This document shows positions 3,855-29,710 of a stretch of DNA of 64,000 bases, in pieces. Location of the stretch: sequence record NC_010821.1; one strand, 5' to 3'. A program made the translations under genes and the position numbers. Position 1 is the first letter of the stretch. The number at the start of each line of letters is the position of its first letter. Under the pieces are notes generated by a model that worked only from the letters and a program-made list of their open reading frames with translations, was not told the origin of the DNA and did not search any database.

Positions 3855-3885
3855 ATTATTAGAAGCCTTTTAAAGAGTATATTAC
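3855..3885 (+). promoter_or_regulatory. early (virion-RNAP) promoter, copy 1 of a 31-bp exact repeat
   Basis: attattagaagccttttaaagagtatattac ends in TATATTAC, the phiKZ early promoter motif; identical at 41500-41530. Confidence 0.7.
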
Positions 3886-6374: not shown

Positions 6375-7292
6375 TCAACGCAACCAGTTAGGCTTACGAA
6401 TACCTTTAGCACGATCCCAGCCCAGTGTAGTGATCAGCTCACTTACGTCGTGGGTAGCAGATTCAAGACCCAGGCCAGTACGGCGCCTGGCTTCGTCCTG
6501 CATGCGCCACAGTGTATCTGGCGTAATGACCCGTTCTGGTTTGCATTCAGCCTCAGTGAAGCCCTCAAGAGCTGGAGAACTGTATTTGTTGGCAGTAAAG
6601 ATACCGCCTTCACCTACGAAGTCCCAAGTCGAGATTTCACGAGTATACTTAACACCACGATACGGATCATCTTGAGTGATGGAACGCACGGAGCAATAAG
6701 TGTTAATGCTTGGGTTATCGAGTGAGTCTTTAAAGACCTGTGCAAAAGGACCGTATGGCTTAGCCTCAGCTACAACCATAGTTACAGCCTTACCTTCTTC
6801 ATTGCGACCTGGCATCAGAGTCAGGTTACGAATGTGTGCACATACCCGGTTGTCATCAATCTGACGAATACGAGTGAGATACTCAGTATCAGACATTGGC
6901 TTACGAACTACACGACCATCGATCAAAAGATCAGTGAACGGTTCAGGGTGTTTGAATTCCATGAACAGAACGCCTTTCTTCAACCGACGCATCAATGAGC
7001 TATTAGGCTCGAACATCGCTCGACCAGAAGCTTCATCGTAGAACATACCAGCTGAGTTGTTAGTGCCATAGCTACCAACAACCAGCGTGTAGTATCCATC
7101 AGCCGAAGCTGGTAAGATACCACGTTTATTAGTGCCAGCCAACATAGCGCAGCCTACGGTAACCGCTGCGTTAGAGGTTGGAACCTGACCCATGGGATTA
7201 GGGACTGTACGCCCCACAACAACACCACTCAGATTCATAAGAACATTCCGATTAAGTACGGAGCAATTCCTCGATGAGTTCAACTGTTTCAC
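6375..7292 (-). CDS. prohead (head maturation) serine protease, phiKZ gp175 / SPN3US gp245-like; true start probably 7238 or 7193
   Basis: EFKHP (His) and CSVRS (Ser) motifs, DGYYTLVVG; C-terminal ALE/GLE self-cleavage-like motifs; synteny with the vRNAP block. Confidence 0.75.
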   Translation of the reverse strand: MKQLNSSRNCSVLNRNVLMNLSGVVVGRTVPNPMGQVPTSNAAVTVGCAMLAGTNKRGILPASADGYYTLVVGSYGTNNSAGMFYDEASGRAMFEPNSSLMRRLKKGVLFMEFKHPEPFTDLLIDGRVVRKPMSDTEYLTRIRQIDDNRVCAHIRNLTLMPGRNEEGKAVTMVVAEAKPYGPFAQVFKDSLDNPSINTYCSVRSITQDDPYRGVKYTREISTWDFVGEGGIFTANKYSSPALEGFTEAECKPERVITPDTLWRMQDEARRRTGLGLESATHDVSELITTLGWDRAKGIRKPNWLR

Positions 7293-10256: not shown

Positions 10257-10457
10257 TCAGTTGTAAGCTTTGAATTTAAGAATGCGACCAATCACACTGG
10301 CCTTGATATCGTTAGCTGTGATGTACTCGCCTTCGATGGTATTAGCTGCGGAGTCAGAACCCATGGTACGAGCGATTGCCTCGTATGCCAATTCAGCTGC
10401 GGCGGTCAGAACAGCTAAGTTCTGACCATGTACTACGTTGTTACTTTGCTTTTGCAT
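10257..10457 (-). CDS. small hypothetical protein
   Basis: 66 aa, overlaps the end of the beta gene. Confidence 0.55.
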   Translation of the reverse strand: MQKQSNNVVHGQNLAVLTAAAELAYEAIARTMGSDSAANTIEGEYITANDIKASVIGRILKFKAYN

Positions 10458-11580
10458 TTACAGTTCCTCGATAAACACCAGCTACCCGTTTAGAGAGAGC
10501 TTTCAAAAGAATGCTGGTCGTTGCGATTAGTTTAGGAGACATTACCATCCGTTCTTCCACAGAGGTGTTGCCGAAGATGATGTCAATTGGAGTGCCGTCT
10601 TCCAGAGTGTTAGTGCCAGTCATCACACGAGAGATAACAGTCTTCATCTGGTTACACAGTACAGCTTTGTCACCTGTACCGAATGGGATATCATGGTCGA
10701 TGTAAATACGAATAACCATGCTATCTGGTTCCAAGATCTGACCTTTAATACGGAAGGAGGAATCAACCTCACCCGAATAAGCATTACGTCCAGTTTGCTG
10801 AGCAATCTCTGCACGTGCTTTGTCTGAGGCTTCTGCGAGTTCACGCAGGTTATCAGACATGTCTTCGATGTCACCATGATAGAAACATTCGATCTTAGAA
10901 ACCGTACCTACGACCTTAGCAGTAGGGGTAGAAGACGACAGTCGTTTGAGCGTCTCAATAGAGGCATCATCAAACAGCGAGCCTGCGGCCGTTTCGGGGT
11001 CTTCAATAATACACAATATTGAACTGAGATCCAGATGGTCACCCGGCTGAACCAATTCAGATACGTGCTGATCAAACCGAACGATAACGTTCTTCACGTC
11101 AGTGGTCTGTGTATTAAGCTTCTTAGCAATAGACTCAGAAACTACCGATCCGTCTTCCAGAGTGTCCAAGTTGTCATCAAACGCAACTACACCGATTACC
11201 CCAGGCATCAGAGAAACCTGATCTGGATTGTAACGGTCTTCTTTGAAATATTTCCGGTTGTATGTAATTGTGTCACCACGTTTAAATTTGTCACCTTTCT
11301 TAAACTTGGTAACCAATTCGTGTGGATACACAACACCCGCAGCTGAACCGTGAATCGTGCCAAGGGGCATTGATTCAACTTCACCATCGGCGTACTGTAC
11401 AGTAATACCGTGTTTGTCCAACGCAACTACTTGACCATCTTGCTCTGCTGCTGTAGCAAAGATACTCGATGTACGTTGACCTACGACCTGTTCGTAACCT
11501 GTACGTACAGGCGAAAGATCGTAACCGTCAGCATACAGACCTTGTTGTTGCTGAATCGAAGCAAAGCCGATCCGCTTCAT
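10441..11580 (-). CDS. virion RNA polymerase beta subunit, exon 2
   Basis: MKRIGFASIQQQQ continues RpoB HDD.NR...Q; VRTGYE, GDKFKRGD and LEDGSVVSES RpoB-like motifs; no SD before 11580. Confidence 0.85.
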   Translation of the reverse strand: MKRIGFASIQQQQGLYADGYDLSPVRTGYEQVVGQRTSSIFATAAEQDGQVVALDKHGITVQYADGEVESMPLGTIHGSAAGVVYPHELVTKFKKGDKFKRGDTITYNRKYFKEDRYNPDQVSLMPGVIGVVAFDDNLDTLEDGSVVSESIAKKLNTQTTDVKNVIVRFDQHVSELVQPGDHLDLSSILCIIEDPETAAGSLFDDASIETLKRLSSSTPTAKVVGTVSKIECFYHGDIEDMSDNLRELAEASDKARAEIAQQTGRNAYSGEVDSSFRIKGQILEPDSMVIRIYIDHDIPFGTGDKAVLCNQMKTVISRVMTGTNTLEDGTPIDIIFGNTSVEERMVMSPKLIATTSILLKALSKRVAGVYRGTVNAKAK

Positions 11581-11916
11581 CGTGATATTCAGTATGAGTC
11601 GTTAATTCATACCCGCGCCATTACGCGCAGCTGCATGTCGCCATGCAGACTAGACTATATCTTCATCTCAGTGAGATGCTCCCCATTTCCACCCACTTGG
11701 GTGTACACCGTGATAAGCGGTTAGTCGTTGAACGTTCCTTACATTTCTGTAAGGCTTCGCTGCTGATTGTCTCAGAGAGATATCCCAGCAATTAAAGGAG
11801 ATTCCATCTAGGTATCGCTACCTAGTGGGACTGTATCTATTAAATCTTTGTATTGGATAAACCAAGTTGTCGACCACACTCAATGTAGCGTAGACTTTAC
11901 AAACATTCAATACACA
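11581..11916 (-). mobile_element. group I self-splicing intron (336 nt, no endonuclease ORF)
   Basis: Minus strand: P AAUUGCUGGG (11793-11784), Q AAUCAGCAG (11768-11760), R UCAACGACUA (11731-11722), S AAGAUAUAGUCU (11663-11652); exon ends in U, intron ends in G; splicing restores HDD|MKR in frame. Confidence 0.9.
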
Positions 11917-14900
11917 ATCATCGTGGGCAATACCAACACCCAGCAATGCAGAAGTCGAAAGCAGTTTAGACTTACCATCTTTAGATGGGTCATACAAACG
12001 GGTCAAACCACGCATCGATGTGAAGTTAGCATCTGGCGTCATGTAAGCAATAATACCTACGTCACCAGAGTCAACAGTCGACTCAGATACAACACCCAAA
12101 TCAGACTCACCATAAATACGAGTACGAGCAACCATCGATACCGCTGCACGCCCACCATCACCACGATAGGTCATGGCTTCTTGTTCACGCAGGTTAGCGA
12201 TTGGGTTGGAGTCTTCAATCGTCGCTACAGTCGGGTCGTTGAGTTTAGTCCATACTTCATGACGATCCAGAATCACCTTGACATCAGTGGAACCTTCACG
12301 TGCATTGTAACGCTTGATGGCCTTAGACAACGAACTGAAGATCTGACCTGCAATACGTTCGTAACCACGATAGCGCATGTACTGACCATCTACTTCACCC
12401 GGAGACCAATCTTCCATCAACAGTTCAACCGATCTGAACAGCAGACCTTGGAAGTCTGTCGGTTCACCCATCTCTATCAGCATACCTTCAGTGATCGGAT
12501 CAACGAATGCCTCAAACAGGAAATCGATTTCACGAATGAAACGGTTACCCATGTCTTGTTCGATCAGCACACGGTGATACACATCCTTCTTATCGAAGTC
12601 ATAACGAGAGTAATTACGCAGCACTTTGTGATAACGACGCAGACCACCTAAGACCAACATCGAACGATAATCATCGCGTGGGAACACAAGGATCTCATCG
12701 TTGAATGCCAATGTGTAATCGTCGCCAGTCACCACGATACTCTTACCACGTGAATGCGCTTGGTAGCTAACGCCCAACAGATCCAGCAAGTTAGTCAACC
12801 CGAGTTGATAGCCCAATACAAAACCAATTGGGATGTCCTTACCCGAGATCTTAACGTCAACAGCTTCCAGTGGAGCTTTAGCAGCGTTGATACCAGTCAT
12901 GTCCAACAGCGTACCCATTGGTTCCAACTCGTTACCTTCTTTAAGATAGAAGATACCAGCTTTATCCAACAGAATAGCATGTCCTTCACGAACACCTACC
13001 ATTACGTATCCATCACGTTCATTGAACTCTGGATCGATGTTGAACTTTTCCTTAAAGTACTTAGCTCGATTAGGGTAGTTGAAGTAAAGGTGATTGGCAC
13101 CGTTGTCAATACTAGCGAACTTACCGGCCATGGCCGAGTAAACACGTGGTAGGTGATATTCAGACAGATCCAACTCAATGTATTTCTGGTTGGTCACAAT
13201 CGGGTTAGTAGCATCCCGAGCTTTCGTATCGATCTGACGAGTTAACCAAACATCAAAAGCATGCTCTGCACGAGGTGAACGCATAACGAATGTTTTATTG
13301 GTATAGCTAGTCAGCGCAACCCGAGTAGGAGATACTTTACGGATTGGAATATCTGCCCGCTGAACGCGTTGACGATACGTTACGCCGTTACTGAGGAAAC
13401 GACCATCTTTATCGATAACAGGAATTGTAAAGTTAAGTTGTGAAGCCATACCACGAACCGGCTTAACTGTAACCGTGAAGGTTTGAGTGTGGTTCATAGC
13501 GTCTTCGTTTTCTTGAATCTTGATATCTGTTACAGCCACGCCTTGACGTTGAATCGCCATGATCGATTGCAAGATATCTTTTGGTAACAGAGTCTTGATG
13601 TACTTACGCATCATCGACTTGTGTACCGAACGCAACATGGATTTATCCATGATGGTTGTTTTATCAGGGAACTCGTGAGCAGGTACCTCGAAGTCTTCCT
13701 TGGCGTATTGCATGGCTTCTTTAACAGTCAGACCACTACCAAATGGATCAGGCATTTCTTCATAACGCTGGGCGTCATCAATAGCCATCTCGAATGTACG
13801 TTCAGAGATCATACCCACTTTAGCCAGACGGAATGCACGCTTTGCTACACCATCCAACATCTTATCGCCAGTAGTGAACTCTTGGTCAATAATCGTAGCT
13901 GGACGAGCCTGTTCCACCTTGAGGGTCTTAGCTGCGACCCCACTGAGTTCATCGTTTTCGATGTTAAGCGTAGTACGTTCAAGATCCAGCTCTGGTGGTG
14001 GCTCAAAAGTAACCTGCAAAATATCCAGATCGAACGACCGGTATACTTTACTGAGAGGTGGCGTTACCACCTCAGGTTCTTCGATATCGAGGTCAACACT
14101 GACTTGCTTAGCTTTGATCTCTACCGGTTCTTCCTCTTCAGAGAACTCTTCTTCGTCTTCATTAACGACGATTACTGGCTCATCAGATTCTTCAGCTTCG
14201 GCTTCGATCATGGCATTGGCTTGAACGTTAGCATCGTTCTCGATCAGTTGATCGTTACCAGCAGCATACTCAACCAGAGTAGTCATCAAACTAACAAAGC
14301 GGCGCTGAATCAACTCAGGTTTGAAGTAAGCTTCCATGCCGAATTCATCGACATAGGTTTCAAAGCCGTATGTCAATCGTTCGCTAATACCCATATCAGA
14401 GAGGTTACGTTTCTCTTCATAGGTCTCATAGTTACCGTCGGCATCTTGATAAGTCTCAAAAGTAACTGCATCTTCCAGTAGCTTGAGTTTATCCGCTTCT
14501 TTCTCTTCTTCGGTCTGTTCACGCCATTCGTCCAGCTTACCCAAGTTGATAACAAAGAAGCTACCTTGAACTCGGATAAAGAAGTTGATCTGCGGGAAGT
14601 ATTTCTTATCGACTTTAGAGACAAACGAAGTCTTACGATCTGGACCCAAGAATCGATACAGATCAAACAGATCCATCAATTCACCTGTACGGAAAGTCTC
14701 CAACAGGTTTTGAGTTTGAGACGTTTCGAACATCTTGAACTGAGCCATAGTCGGCATCGATTCAGGAACATGCAGCTCGATGAAATGGTTCCACGTTGGG
14801 AACCGAGTGCAGGCATCTTGTACCCCATCCCAGAAAGTAGCCGTGTCGTTCACCCAACGATAGTAGTTAGCTTTATAGCTAGCGATGTATCGATACAGTG

Positions 14901-15279
14901 GATTCAGCAGGTTGTAGTTAAACAACGCTACGTTCTGTTGGTTCAGTTTAACCGATTCATCACGACGCAGTGGTTTGAAGAAACGATTCTGTCTACGGAA
15001 GTCATTAATCAAAGTAGGTGGTAACACCGAAGTACGCTTTGGGTTACCTACTTCAGACTTAAGTTCGGTGATCTGTTCAAGGAACACCTTACCTTTAAGT
15101 TTGGCAATGATTGGATCTACTTGCGATGGACCTAAGACGGCTTGGTTATCCGCATGAAAGTGATACACTGTTTCCATAGGGAAATCGAATTTACCAATCG
15201 CGTGCAGACGCGGAGACTGAAGCTCCGCTGCCTGACGTAGACCAAAGCTTCTTAAAAACTGGTCAATTTTTAAACGCAT
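11917..15279 (-). CDS. virion RNA polymerase beta subunit, exon 1 (phiKZ gp178 / SPN3US gp241-like); spliced product 1500 aa
   Basis: 1121 codons ending ...GVGIAHDD; RpoB-like GVTYRQRVQRAD, YRGDGGR and ESTVDSGDVG. Confidence 0.88.
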
Positions 15280-26079: not shown

Positions 26080-26115
26080 GGGGTGGTAGATTCTACAGAG
26101 GATCTACCGTCCCCT
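26080..26115 (+). terminator. hairpin after the gp182-like gene
   Basis: ggggtggtagatt...gatctaccgtcccc followed by ttaactttt. Confidence 0.5.
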
Positions 26116-26145
26116 TAACTTTTATTCCCCATCGAGGATGCAATA

Positions 26146-26634
26146 ATGTTTAAACAGTTTATCTTGTGGTTGGTAACTAAGTTACTGACCCCGCGTGATC
26201 GCCTGCAACTTGTAGTGGATGATGGCTTCCTGGCCAACCCTCGTCGCACTATTGACAACCTTTACCATGTGGCCCACTCTAATAAACACGGTGTAAAATT
26301 CGAATCATTTGACCGTGTATCGGCAAAGCGGCTATCTGAATTCGATATCTCTGGGTCTGTCTATATAGCCGTACTGTTTGCCTTACATGACAAACTTATT
26401 GCATGCACTGGCGGCAGTTGTTTTGAAGAGGAGGTTCGCAACTTCTTCCATAAAGTGAACACTATTAAAGGTCATGGTAACCGTCTGAAGGTTAGTAAAG
26501 ATCTTTTCGAGTTGGTACGCAAAGAGACCCTGTTTGCCAACGAGCAAGATATTAATCTGGTAGCGCATGTATTGCAGCACCAGTACATCGACACTGAAGC
26601 AACTACTAAATTCCTCACTAACACTGGAGTGTAA
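26146..26634 (+). CDS. hypothetical protein
   Basis: 162 aa, GAGG RBS. Confidence 0.7.
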   Translation: MFKQFILWLVTKLLTPRDRLQLVVDDGFLANPRRTIDNLYHVAHSNKHGVKFESFDRVSAKRLSEFDISGSVYIAVLFALHDKLIACTGGSCFEEEVRNFFHKVNTIKGHGNRLKVSKDLFELVRKETLFANEQDINLVAHVLQHQYIDTEATTKFLTNTGV

Positions 26635-26637
26635 CCC

Positions 26638-27162
26638 ATGAGCCTTATCCAATCGATTGCCAAAACTATCTACACCACCTTCGTTCCTGAGAACGTGCGT
26701 CAAGAAGAAGCTACAGCTATTCTGTCCGATAACAACCGTGCTAGTATGGCGTTGTCTTACATCGGTAAAGAAGCGGCTACGCTCGATCACAGCTCGCAGG
26801 AATACAAACGTGCCTTGGGTGCAGCTGAAGCTCTGGTACTACTGCACAACCGTGCGTCTAGCTTTACTCAGATGTGCCGTAGTATGGTACGCCGTACTTC
26901 CACAGATTCGTACTACGTTACTGCTGTTCTGGGTAACCTGGTTTATAAAACTGAATCGTTGGCATCTGGTCAAACCTCTACCCAAGGTGGTGAAGCTGAT
27001 AAACTGCTGAAAGCTATCGCCGTTGAAGTAGCTGCTGCGAAAGAAGAGAAGTCTTTCATCAAACGTCGTAGCATTATCCGCAATGCGGTTAAGCGTGAGC
27101 TCCCAACGATGACTGCTGACGACCTGAGTCTGGCCGTTGAATTGATCCTCAATAATGTGTAA
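26638..27162 (+). CDS. hypothetical protein
   Basis: 174 aa, GGAG RBS. Confidence 0.7.
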   Translation: MSLIQSIAKTIYTTFVPENVRQEEATAILSDNNRASMALSYIGKEAATLDHSSQEYKRALGAAEALVLLHNRASSFTQMCRSMVRRTSTDSYYVTAVLGNLVYKTESLASGQTSTQGGEADKLLKAIAVEVAAAKEEKSFIKRRSIIRNAVKRELPTMTADDLSLAVELILNNV

Positions 27163-27183: not shown

Positions 27184-27783
27184 ATGGAAAGTATTATCAC
27201 TGGCCTTACTTGGGCCAAAGGTCTTGAGTCCGCTGACGGCGTAGCTCAGGTAGTAGATGTAAAAGAAGCTAAGTCTCACATTGACATTGATGACGTCGAT
27301 CAAAACGATGTTAAAGATGAAGACACTGAGACCCTACCTAATACCGATGGTGGTGATGAAGTTAAGGTTGCTACTGACCATGACGTGGTCTCGGCTGAAT
27401 CGGCGACAGTAGTGTCTGGTGATGAAGGCGGTAAAGTGATCGAGGCCATGTCCGTCGATCCTATCTCTGGTGCAGCTAAGCGGTTTGTGATCTCGGGCTT
27501 TAATGCCCAGACTAACCCAGCTGCCGAGCCGGGTGATAACCTGCTGAGTCTGGTAATCCTGTTGCAGAACGGTATTATCCCAGAAGTAGGTGTTAACGGT
27601 GTTACATGTGAAGACCTTCTGAAAGTAGTCGAGGAAGTTTTCGTAAGCTTCCAAGAAGGTAAGTTCGCATGTGAAGAAAACGAGGAAGTCCTCCAAGGTG
27701 TACGTATGGCACAAGCAGCCATTACTAAACGCCTGCTTCGTCGTGAATCCCAAGGTACCGAAGGGACCTACAAAGGTAACTGA
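27184..27783 (+). CDS. Tad1-like anti-defence signal-sponge domain with an acidic N-terminal extension
   Basis: C-terminal LQNG...NGV..EDLL.VV....SFQEGKFACEEN.........KRLLRRESQGTEGT matches the Tad1 pattern FQKG..HGV..DLL.IV.DRL.SFQAGPF..REN......RR..DR..R.V.GT as recalled. Confidence 0.75.
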   Translation: MESIITGLTWAKGLESADGVAQVVDVKEAKSHIDIDDVDQNDVKDEDTETLPNTDGGDEVKVATDHDVVSAESATVVSGDEGGKVIEAMSVDPISGAAKRFVISGFNAQTNPAAEPGDNLLSLVILLQNGIIPEVGVNGVTCEDLLKVVEEVFVSFQEGKFACEENEEVLQGVRMAQAAITKRLLRRESQGTEGTYKGN

Positions 27784-27789
27784 CATAAC

Positions 27790-27816
27790 GCCCTTCCTTC
27801 GGGAAGGGCTTTATTT
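27790..27816 (+). terminator. intrinsic terminator ending the late unit
   Basis: gcccttcc-ttcg-ggaagggc followed by tttattt. Confidence 0.75.
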
Positions 27817-27825
27817 CGTAGTAGA

Positions 27826-27847
27826 AAATATTTGAGATTTATATTAC
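27826..27847 (+). promoter_or_regulatory. early promoter
   Basis: aaatatttgagatttatattac containing TATATTAC. Confidence 0.7.
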
Positions 27848-27882
27848 TGCTATGTATTCTAAACTAGATGTAAGAATAACCC

Positions 27883-28005
27883 ATGATTGAGGAAATGCGG
27901 TCTGTCCCACCTGAACCAAGTCATGTTCCAGAACTACCGATGTCACCATTACGGCGGTGGTTACTGAAACTCAAATATAAACTGCGGAGTTTATTCAATG
28001 CGTAA
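27883..28005 (+). CDS. small basic amphipathic peptide (40 aa), absent from the ORF track
   Basis: MIEEMRSVPPEPSHVPELPMSPLRRWLLKLKYKLRSLFNA; overlaps the next ATG. Confidence 0.45.
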   Translation: MIEEMRSVPPEPSHVPELPMSPLRRWLLKLKYKLRSLFNA

Positions 28006-28489
28006 TTGTCCTACCGGATATTGTGGTGACCCTTGTTTGTGCAAAGGTGCGCTCGATCATCTCAGTCGTAGCGATGCCAAAGACATGTTGCGTCTGGCTG
28101 ATAATCGCATTAAAGCCATTGATGCAAAAGCGGCTAGTGAGAAACATGGCGAAACCCTCGTACCGTATGCGGCTATTGAGGTAGTACTGTGTGCACTCAA
28201 GTATAACGGTGGCATTGTCAAATGCAACGAGTTATTGCATCGAGTGTTACTGACCAAGCCAACTGACCGAATTGAAACTATATCTGGTATCAAATCGGTT
28301 CTACTGGACGTTGAGGGTGATCCAATCTTCAAGGCCGGTAATGTACCTGAAACTAATACTCGTATCAGGTTCGAGGTATTGCAATGGGGTGATACCGTTG
28401 GGGTATCTGTAGACTGCGAAGGCGGTTACATTCAAGAAGCCTACACCAAACTCAACTACACAACTGTTTTTCTACCAGAGGGTCTTTAA
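27998..28489 (+). CDS. hypothetical protein
   Basis: 163-aa ORF, N-terminal Cys cluster. Confidence 0.65.
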   Translation: MRNCPTGYCGDPCLCKGALDHLSRSDAKDMLRLADNRIKAIDAKAASEKHGETLVPYAAIEVVLCALKYNGGIVKCNELLHRVLLTKPTDRIETISGIKSVLLDVEGDPIFKAGNVPETNTRIRFEVLQWGDTVGVSVDCEGGYIQEAYTKLNYTTVFLPEGL

Positions 28490-29710
28490 ATGAGCGTTGT
28501 AAACTATTCGGACTTGGTCCAACTGTTCCCATCCGACGTTTTGGTGCAAATGGCTGAAGCTATCACCGTTGAGTTACGTAATCGGAATACCAGCCATAAT
28601 AGTACTAAACTGGAAGATCTCCGTGAGCGCTATGGTGCCGATGGTAACCGTCTACTGCAACTCCCAGTGTCAGGTTATCATGAACATATGTTAAACCAGT
28701 TTGGTATGGGCGTGCCTGGCCAAATGAACCTACCTCCGGTTAACTACAATCAGGTACCACAGGCTAGTTTCGGCAGCGTACAAACTGCGTATGAACTCAA
28801 CGATCTTCCTTTCAGCACTACGTTCGATATCGACTTCAATAAGTTCGTGTATCGTCCGACTGGACACGGTCTGAAGTCGTTGCAGGAGTTGTTCGGTAGC
28901 TCACTGATTGAAGAAGTGCGTCGTCTGGCTAACGATGACATGGAGATCTTTATCGACCCAACGCTGCTGCCTAACGGTCAGGTGCATCTGCATAACGCGC
29001 CTATTGGTTCGACTATTACCATCGCAGCTACGTTGCGTCAACTGGTAGACTGGTATAACGGTCTTCCTCCAGTACTGGAAGAAAGCGTTGTAGTGGAACC
29101 ACTTCGTTACATTGGTGGTTGGAGTGTCCATGGTGACCAAAACCAACTCCTGCTGGAATACGATGGTAAGTCTCTGGAAGCCGAAGGTGAGATTAACGGT
29201 AATCAGGTGAAAGGTGTTCCATTCAGAGCCAACCGTACTATCCAGTTGATCCCAAACTCCAACATACCTGAGTTGATGGAACAAGGGCGGATCAATGTAG
29301 GGGCGACGATTGAGCGGCTTCCAGCGATTAAGTCGGTGTATGTCGAAGTAGGTGGCCATATGCTCCGCGCTGTGACTAAGACTAACCCAACTGCACAATT
29401 CCAACCATCCCTGGAAAGCACTCTTTTCAAACTACTGGATATGCGCCTCGGTATTGAACTCAAAGCTGGCATGACTGATTGCTTTGGTGAGATTATTGAG
29501 TGGAGTCATCTGCTGGGTGATGAGACCATCACGCTCGACCTCACCTTGGCTGCACGGTATAATCCAGATCGAGCTGAAATCGTTACCACGACTACGCCAG
29601 TTGAATTTATTCATAACGGTCCTAAAGGATCGTACCTGAGTTCACTGCTCTCGATGCCTAACTGTGGTATCCTCGCATTCGATCTCAGCGCTGTAATCGA
29701 AACTAACTAA
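28490..29710 (+). CDS. hypothetical protein
   Basis: 406-aa ORF abutting the previous gene. Confidence 0.75.
   Translation: MSVVNYSDLVQLFPSDVLVQMAEAITVELRNRNTSHNSTKLEDLRERYGADGNRLLQLPVSGYHEHMLNQFGMGVPGQMNLPPVNYNQVPQASFGSVQTAYELNDLPFSTTFDIDFNKFVYRPTGHGLKSLQELFGSSLIEEVRRLANDDMEIFIDPTLLPNGQVHLHNAPIGSTITIAATLRQLVDWYNGLPPVLEESVVVEPLRYIGGWSVHGDQNQLLLEYDGKSLEAEGEINGNQVKGVPFRANRTIQLIPNSNIPELMEQGRINVGATIERLPAIKSVYVEVGGHMLRAVTKTNPTAQFQPSLESTLFKLLDMRLGIELKAGMTDCFGEIIEWSHLLGDETITLDLTLAARYNPDRAEIVTTTTPVEFIHNGPKGSYLSSLLSMPNCGILAFDLSAVIETN

Follow-up and report, generated by a model that had tools for sequence, protein, structure and literature searches.

The closest described counterpart of the protein considered here is gp184 of phage ΦKZ, which belongs to the inner vertex-binding complex as a minor capsid protein. 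It has been described as 'mainly β-strands', is only partly resolved, closes the gap that separates gp86 from a subunit of the major capsid protein, and is cut by the head protease gp175 (PMC11297242). Its annotation reads 'structural protein'. Western blots made with tagged virions and translation-blocked cells showed that gp184 is injected (PMC10449902), and a TnSeq study reported 'Tad1, gp184' of ΦKZ as non-essential. Literature that cites Li et al. 2024 (Nature 635:719) names the protein Tad1 and states that it blocks both Thoeris and CBASS by sequestering their signals; the 2023 preprint of Li et al. is without ΦKZ data. For Goslar, a phage of the same family, no gp184 homolog has been reported in the capsid. 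Two other ΦKZ proteins are processed at sites that have been mapped, gp93 at E13|S14 and gp162 at 17|18 and 137|138; in each of them the capsid holds the middle piece and the C-terminal domain is set free (PMC11297242).

Stand-alone members of the Tad1 family are represented by CbTad1 (7UAV/7UAW/8SMD/8KBE-H), CmTad1 (8KBB-D) and SBSphiJ7 Tad1. Mutation of CbTad1 residues F82, N92, R109 and R113 abolishes the binding of gcADPR and of 2',3'-cGAMP (Li et al. preprint). A second site, which requires formation of a hexamer, binds cA3 and cAAG and is built from CbTad1 R90/T97 (equivalent to CmTad1 R88/T95) together with neighbouring residues; the two sites are independent, in that mutation of one leaves the other unaffected (Li et al. 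preprint).

Results

Genomic context of gp280

The window, by which we mean the whole stretch of DNA analysed (64,000 nucleotides), matches Pseudomonas phage 201φ2-1 (EU197055.1/NC_010821) at 100% identity, and a position in the window equals the position in the record minus 186000. The gene under study is the following.

27184..27783, + strand: gp280 (ABY63107.1), an ORF of 199 aa with an ATG start, read here as a precursor composed of a leader, an acidic linker and a Tad1 domain

The deposited record describes gp280 as 'identified using mass spectrometry; similar to phiKZ gp184', a note that we infer to refer to the virion proteome, and the protein has thus been seen by mass spectrometry as has gp184 of ΦKZ virions. 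Synteny and similarity together make gp280 the positional ortholog of ΦKZ gp184. A search of PHROGs assigned it to phrog_23843 (2.3e-110), and the families into which it falls, three in all, are of unknown function. The whole gp184/gp280 group is still named 'hypothetical protein' in public databases, and our literature search found no experimental work specific to gp280.

According to the record annotation, gp276, gp277, gp278 and gp279 lie upstream of gp280 on the + strand. A previous interpretation of this DNA made from its letters alone (hereafter the sequence-only reading) had seen a tape-measure gene here, and gp276 is annotated instead as a virion protein of the cell-puncturing or tail-lysin type; its identification of a gp182-like gene was correct, gp277 being similar to ΦKZ gp182 and seen by mass spectrometry. 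The same reading had placed gp280 at the end of the co-oriented run, but gp281–gp296, which follow gp280, are annotated on the + strand as well, and gp280 is at most the end of a transcription unit. Gene order in ΦKZ (gp181-gp182-gp183-gp184, a gap, gp185) matches that in 201φ2-1, and the order in Viktualia is equivalent; ΦKZ has one shorter gp183 in place of gp278 and gp279. No PHROG family was found at E≤1e-3 for gp278 and gp279 (26146-27162, + strand) or for gp281 and gp282 (27998-29710, + strand). Directly 3' of gp277 lies a long terminator-like hairpin of 15 pairs (26080-26123, + strand), and gp278–gp280 may therefore form a transcription unit apart from gp276–gp277. Elsewhere in the window, on the minus strand at 10441-15279, the gene for a virion RNA polymerase β-subunit, gp273/274, is annotated as two joined pieces and is described there as 'interrupted by a mobile ...' element.

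gp280 contains a complete Tad1 domain

Three independent tests, a single-sequence search, a family-profile search and a comparison of predicted structure, identify gp280 aa ~74-199 as a complete Tad1 domain.

27400..27780, + strand: predicted mature Tad1 domain, aa 73-199 (127 aa), delimited by the AF2 model, Foldseek and the profile search against the PDB

When the gp280 sequence by itself was compared to the PDB with phmmer, it matched CmTad1 (8kbb) at 4.7e-7, and the single-sequence search also matched 8y6v_I, labelled 'gp184', at 1e-43. A profile built from 27 family members matched CmTad1 at 2.2e-16 and the CbTad1 chains at ~1e-14 (range 2e-16 to 2e-14). The profile match spans residues 7-123 of the 125 in the Tad1 chain, and aa ~78-199 of gp280 therefore make up the whole domain rather than a fragment. 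In the AF2 model, aa 74-199 are predicted at a pLDDT of 80-95 (aa 1-73 fall below 50) and form a four-stranded β-sheet and two long helices, at 142-158 and 164-190; this is the arrangement by which the Tad1 fold is recognised, with an antiparallel β-sheet in the N-terminal part and two long helices after it, towards the C-terminus. Foldseek, run with the gp280 model against the PDB, returned Tad1 as each of the top 20 matches, all with a probability of 1.00, E-values of 1e-7 to 2e-5 and TM-scores to the target of 0.64-0.78; the next match had an E-value of 0.15. The fold is thus that of the stand-alone Tad1 proteins, to which gp280 is ~25% identical, and the suggestion that the C-terminal ~115 aa are Tad1-like is borne out by both the profile and the model.

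In precomputed annotation, 52 of 57 homologs carry the label PF24729.3, for which UniRef gives the name 'Acb2/Tad1 hairpin domain'. When we scanned gp280, its C-terminal domain and four homologs against Pfam, no relevant family came up, even though the homologs bear the PF24729 label, and an NCBIfam scan of gp280 gave no match. We do not count the Pfam result against membership in the Tad1 family because homologs labelled PF24729 drew no match either.

Conservation of the ligand pockets

To place the ligand-binding residues on gp280, we combined tool-made alignments with the residue numbers of the Li et al. preprint. CbTad1 F82, N92, R109 and R113 align with gp280 F156, N166, R183 and R187, respectively. 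In an alignment of the 58-sequence family, the first of these positions is F or Y in 58/58 relatives, N166 and R183 are each present in 58/58, and R187 is present in 57/58; the four residues are nearly invariant in a further 147 nearest representatives too. The C-terminal lid, G-T-E-G-T, is conserved in gp280 as it is in Tad1. gp280 accordingly shares both the four pocket residues and the lid with the stand-alone proteins.

The second site is a different matter, since the residues that contact cyclic trinucleotides and those of the hexamer interface are replaced in gp280, unlike in stand-alone Tad1. The trinucleotide arginine corresponds to E164 of gp280, a position that is E, Q, D or A in the family and R in 0/58 relatives, and the arginine is found in just 15 of the 147 nearest representatives. 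The trinucleotide threonine corresponds to Q171, and the CmTad1 hexamer contacts K96, Q98, E99, M102 and W103 correspond to gp280 G172, R174, M175, A178 and A179. The absence from gp280 of these trinucleotide and hexamer features concerns a secondary property of some Tad1 proteins and not one that defines the family.

The sequence-only reading had noted that several pocket positions differ and had supposed that the ligand may differ also. Our mapping does not support this, as the differences sit in the trinucleotide/hexamer site and the residues at F156, N166, R183 and R187 are conserved. Judged by these residues, the gcADPR/cyclic-dinucleotide pocket at the dimer interface is predicted to be retained in gp280, and the canonical hexamer with its two cA3 sites, and with it the trinucleotide site, is predicted to be lost. 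gp280 probably acts as a dimer whose range of ligands is narrower than that of the crystallised Tad1 proteins.

The N-terminal extension and its predicted processing

Unlike stand-alone Tad1, gp280 carries a 73-aa extension that looks cleavable and in which two parts can be told apart.

27184..27228, + strand: predicted leader peptide, aa 1-15, ending in G-L-E|S, placed by motif conservation
27229..27399, + strand: acidic linker, aa 16-72, predicted to be disordered and ending in V-S-A-E|S, placed by pLDDT, composition and motif

The acidic N-terminus of ~80 aa with its two protease-type motifs had been described correctly beforehand: aa 1-80 are 26% D+E with a net charge of -16, and the motifs G-L-E|S and S-A-E|S fall at residues 13-15/16 and 70-72/73, that is, at E15|S16 and E72|S73. 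A short helix is predicted at aa 4-14 in the AF2 model. The leader is the best-conserved stretch of the extension and is kept in ΦKZ-type sequences. In the second motif, P4 is V and P1' is S, which are the residues preferred by the related protease of SPN3US according to its sequence logo, and the S-A-E|S site lies where the prediction changes from disorder to order, at residue 73.

The extension is kept, with motifs conserved in position, in 58/58 relatives. An (S/A/G)xE motif occurs within the first 25 aa of 56/58 relatives as compared with 44% of composition-matched shuffles, and between positions −25 and +12 relative to the start of the domain in 56/58 relatives as compared with 61% of shuffles; the motif column that ends at E15 is common to 55/58. 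Such a motif is cheap in sequence of this composition (it is found in 44-61% of the shuffled windows), and what makes the motifs suggestive is solely their conserved position. Their conservation supports processing but does not prove it, because the sequences are related to one another and the motif arises so readily.

The enzyme predicted to act on these sites is encoded in the same window.

6375..7217, − strand: gp268, head maturation protease and homolog of ΦKZ gp175, assigned through phrog_3014

gp268 matches phrog_3014, 'head maturation protease', at 2.3e-87, and the record lists it as a virion protein with similarity to phiKZ gp175. A protease gene in the window had been anticipated by the sequence-only reading and is indeed present, but on the minus strand and with an end coordinate other than the one proposed (7292). 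By analogy with ΦKZ, gp268 would be the enzyme that processes gp280, and we infer cleavage after E15 and E72. Such processing would yield aa 1-15, aa 16-72 and a Tad1 domain of 127 aa, the size of a stand-alone Tad1, with the leader a candidate head-targeting signal. The same logic of processing is seen in ΦKZ gp93 and gp162, where a cut ~13-17 residues from the N-terminus is combined with a second one further in, made by the same protease family. The cargo of those two proteins is unrelated to the Tad1 domain of gp280, as they are helix-rich proteins of the inner body, and the middle segment of gp280, unlike theirs, is short, acidic and predicted to be disordered.

Comparison with the capsid-bound part of ΦKZ gp184

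ΦKZ gp184 (PHIKZ184, PDB 8Y6V chain I) and gp280 are 59% identical without a gap over gp184 111-230 and gp280 80-199. Both have an acidic extension with a protease-type motif right before the Tad1 domain, and both have a leader with a motif of this type. Their N-terminal parts (79 aa in gp280 and 110 aa in gp184) gave no BLASTP alignment with each other.

When the ΦKZ-type protein was modelled, an additional small β-module was predicted at aa ~64-100 (pLDDT 70-86), followed by a low-confidence linker at 104-110 and then by Tad1. With this model, Foldseek matched 8y6v_I at 97% identity and an rmsd of 1.4 Å, the modelled length of 8y6v_I being 34 residues; with the gp280 model, Foldseek gave no match to 8y6v_I. 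Alignment, BLASTP and the PDB search agree that gp280 has no counterpart of gp184 aa ~61-110. These comparisons of models suggest that the capsid-bound and sole resolved piece of gp184, the 34 residues of 8y6v_I, would be the β-module that is absent from gp280. As gp280 is without the β-module, its mode of incorporation into the capsid may differ from that of gp184. The leader, which is the element that the two proteins share within the extension, is therefore the better candidate for a loading signal.

The junction downstream of gp280

Two elements follow gp280 on the + strand, both of which had been pointed out before and both of which are supported by our analysis.

27790..27819, + strand: intrinsic-terminator-like hairpin (27790-27809) with a T-run, found by pattern scan
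27834..27851, + strand: AT-rich promoter-like element for gp281 onward, recognised by conservation across three phages

The hairpin has an 8-bp stem with 6 G-C pairs and begins 7 nt past the gp280 stop codon, and an equivalent hairpin lies directly 3' of the orthologous gene in both Viktualia and ΦKZ. The element, which the sequence-only reading had located at ~27840, contains an AT-rich core of ~14 nt (27838-27851) that is identical in 201φ2-1, Viktualia and ΦKZ and is found 59-60 nt past the stop codon in each, the remaining spacer being divergent (junctions compared: window 27790-27851, L003 4107-4180 and L004 3861-3935). An 8-nt core (27840-27847) occurs four times in the 64-kb window, at 3878, 27840, 41523 and 44051, always on the + strand, and two pairs of these sites have longer flanks in common; intergenic position was checked against the annotation for the sites at 3878 and 27840 only. 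A search of the window for a 10-nt element with one mismatch allowed showed no enrichment (9 found as against 5.25 expected), and the AT-rich element is supported because it is conserved across phages.

Early promoters of ΦKZ share an AT-rich consensus, and transcription in this phage is independent of the host, being carried out by phage-encoded RNA polymerases only (PMC10914365). A match to the σ70-type promoter consensus at 27832-27860 was set aside on the assumption that 201φ2-1 resembles ΦKZ in its independence from the host. Past the AT-rich element and just ahead of gp281 is an unannotated ORF of 40 aa (27883-28005, + strand), with a stop codon that overlaps the gp281 start. Neither blastp nor tblastn found a counterpart of it in Viktualia or ΦKZ, and it is probably not a gene.

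Distribution of Tad1-domain proteins

Tad1-domain proteins form a large family, with 5,020 representative clusters matched at E≤1e-3, of which 2,602 remain at E≤1e-10. Among the best 150 of the 5,020 clusters, the domain is stand-alone in 61. In 63 it sits at the C-terminus behind an N-terminal extension of ≥40 aa, in 23 the extension is C-terminal, and 3 are extended at both ends. The N-terminal extensions among these best 150 clusters (~40%) range from 44 to 466 aa and are mostly non-acidic and unrelated to that of gp280. We considered whether an acidic propeptide might be general for extended Tad1 proteins and found that it is not, since D+E exceeds 20% in just 7 of the 63 extensions; a protease-type motif close to the start of the domain shows only weak enrichment, with 26 of 63 extended clusters having one as compared with 34 of 150 in the background.

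In a collection of phage genomes, 147 records matched: 66 from Pseudomonas, 72 from Bacillus, 6 from Rhizobium/Agrobacterium and 3 others. The 66 Pseudomonas records are ΦKZ-like and 201φ2-1-like jumbo phages, and gp280 is matched over its full length in only 15 phage genome records. Partial proteins ascribed to 'Klebsiella pneumoniae', encoded on contigs of 220-572 bp, are fragments of the ΦKZ gp184 sequence and look like carry-over or contamination in those assemblies.

Discussion

On the evidence presented here, gp280 is most probably the precursor of a Tad1-family immune-signal sponge that is loaded into the phage head. In the mechanism that we propose, gp268, a protease of the gp175 type, would cut gp280 after E15 and E72 during head maturation; the cuts would release the ~127-aa Tad1 domain inside the capsid, and the domain would be ejected together with the DNA and bind the gcADPR of Thoeris and the cyclic dinucleotides of CBASS before any phage gene is expressed. 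Given that gp280 is without the vertex-anchoring β-module of gp184, the loading signal would more likely be the conserved N-terminal leader. A sponge that is packaged, matured and injected to act ahead of expression was also what the sequence-only reading had put forward. Each of these steps has published support for ΦKZ gp184, for which the mechanism has already been described, and the idea for gp280 was right without being new.

We weighed this proposal against three others. If gp280 were mainly a structural minor capsid protein or a cement of the vertex, its Tad1-like fold would be a relic without a role as a sponge, and the reported position of ΦKZ gp184 between gp86 and a major capsid protein subunit (PMC11297242), like its annotation as a 'structural protein', would find a ready explanation. 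However, the capsid-bound part of gp184 amounts to 34 residues that match the ΦKZ-specific β-module and not Tad1, and this is the module that gp280 lacks; ΦKZ orf184 is moreover dispensable by TnSeq, which argues against a structural cement. The invariance of the ligand-pocket residues across the 58 relatives, set against a mean column identity of ~48%, points to selection on binding, and we regard a chiefly structural role as decidedly unlikely. We also think it unlikely that the fold has been retargeted to a different ligand, such that it would bind neither gcADPR nor the usual CBASS signals. Such retargeting could account for the substitutions at the trinucleotide Arg/Thr and hexamer positions (E164, Q171, G172, A178 and A179, with Arg in 0/58), but these positions belong to the second site, which is independent of the gcADPR/CDN pocket, and the four residues of that pocket are conserved together with the C-terminal lid. 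In addition, the 59%-identical ΦKZ protein is reported to counter both Thoeris and CBASS.

The remaining proposal accepts that gp280 is a sponge and holds that it is active only when newly made in the cell, the copies in the virion being either incidental or never set free as active protein. For the most part, Tad1 proteins are small, cytoplasmic and stand-alone (61 of the best 150 clusters), and gp280 is without the capsid-anchoring module of ΦKZ, both of which would fit with a protein that acts after synthesis. Yet the N-terminal extension with its positionally conserved motifs is present in 58/58 relatives, the record of gp280 notes its detection by mass spectrometry, and the ΦKZ ortholog is found after infection in cells in which translation is blocked (PMC10449902), and we consider activity restricted to newly made protein very unlikely. 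We thus favour a sponge that is loaded into the head and delivered with the DNA.

What is added here to the ΦKZ literature is, first of all, the existence of 201φ2-1-type proteins that do without the capsid-anchoring module; to this come a residue-level prediction that the ligand range would be narrower and the conserved junction of terminator and promoter. One could go further and speculate that the leader and acidic linker of gp280 together form a self-sufficient, portable cassette, at once a head-loading signal and a propeptide, which needs no anchoring module and pre-loads a soluble, dimeric sponge for gcADPR and cyclic dinucleotides, and that extended Tad1 proteins could mark a wider habit among phages of shipping sponges in the virion; we offer this with little confidence and consider it doubtful as it stands.

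Anti-defence proteins that are injected act before phage gene expression, which is the moment at which an infection is most vulnerable. Because a virion-delivered sponge has already been documented for ΦKZ, gp280 mainly carries that case into a second genus (Serwervirus, host P. chlororaphis). The 'hypothetical protein' labels could be replaced across ~66 Pseudomonas jumbo-phage records. The capsid-anchoring module of gp184 appears to be dispensable for the family, so that the conserved leader is what remains as the likely packaging signal. Finally, retention of the gcADPR/dinucleotide pocket in this clade of jumbo phages, in combination with absence of the trinucleotide site, would predict which host defence systems these phages may be able to blunt and which they may not.
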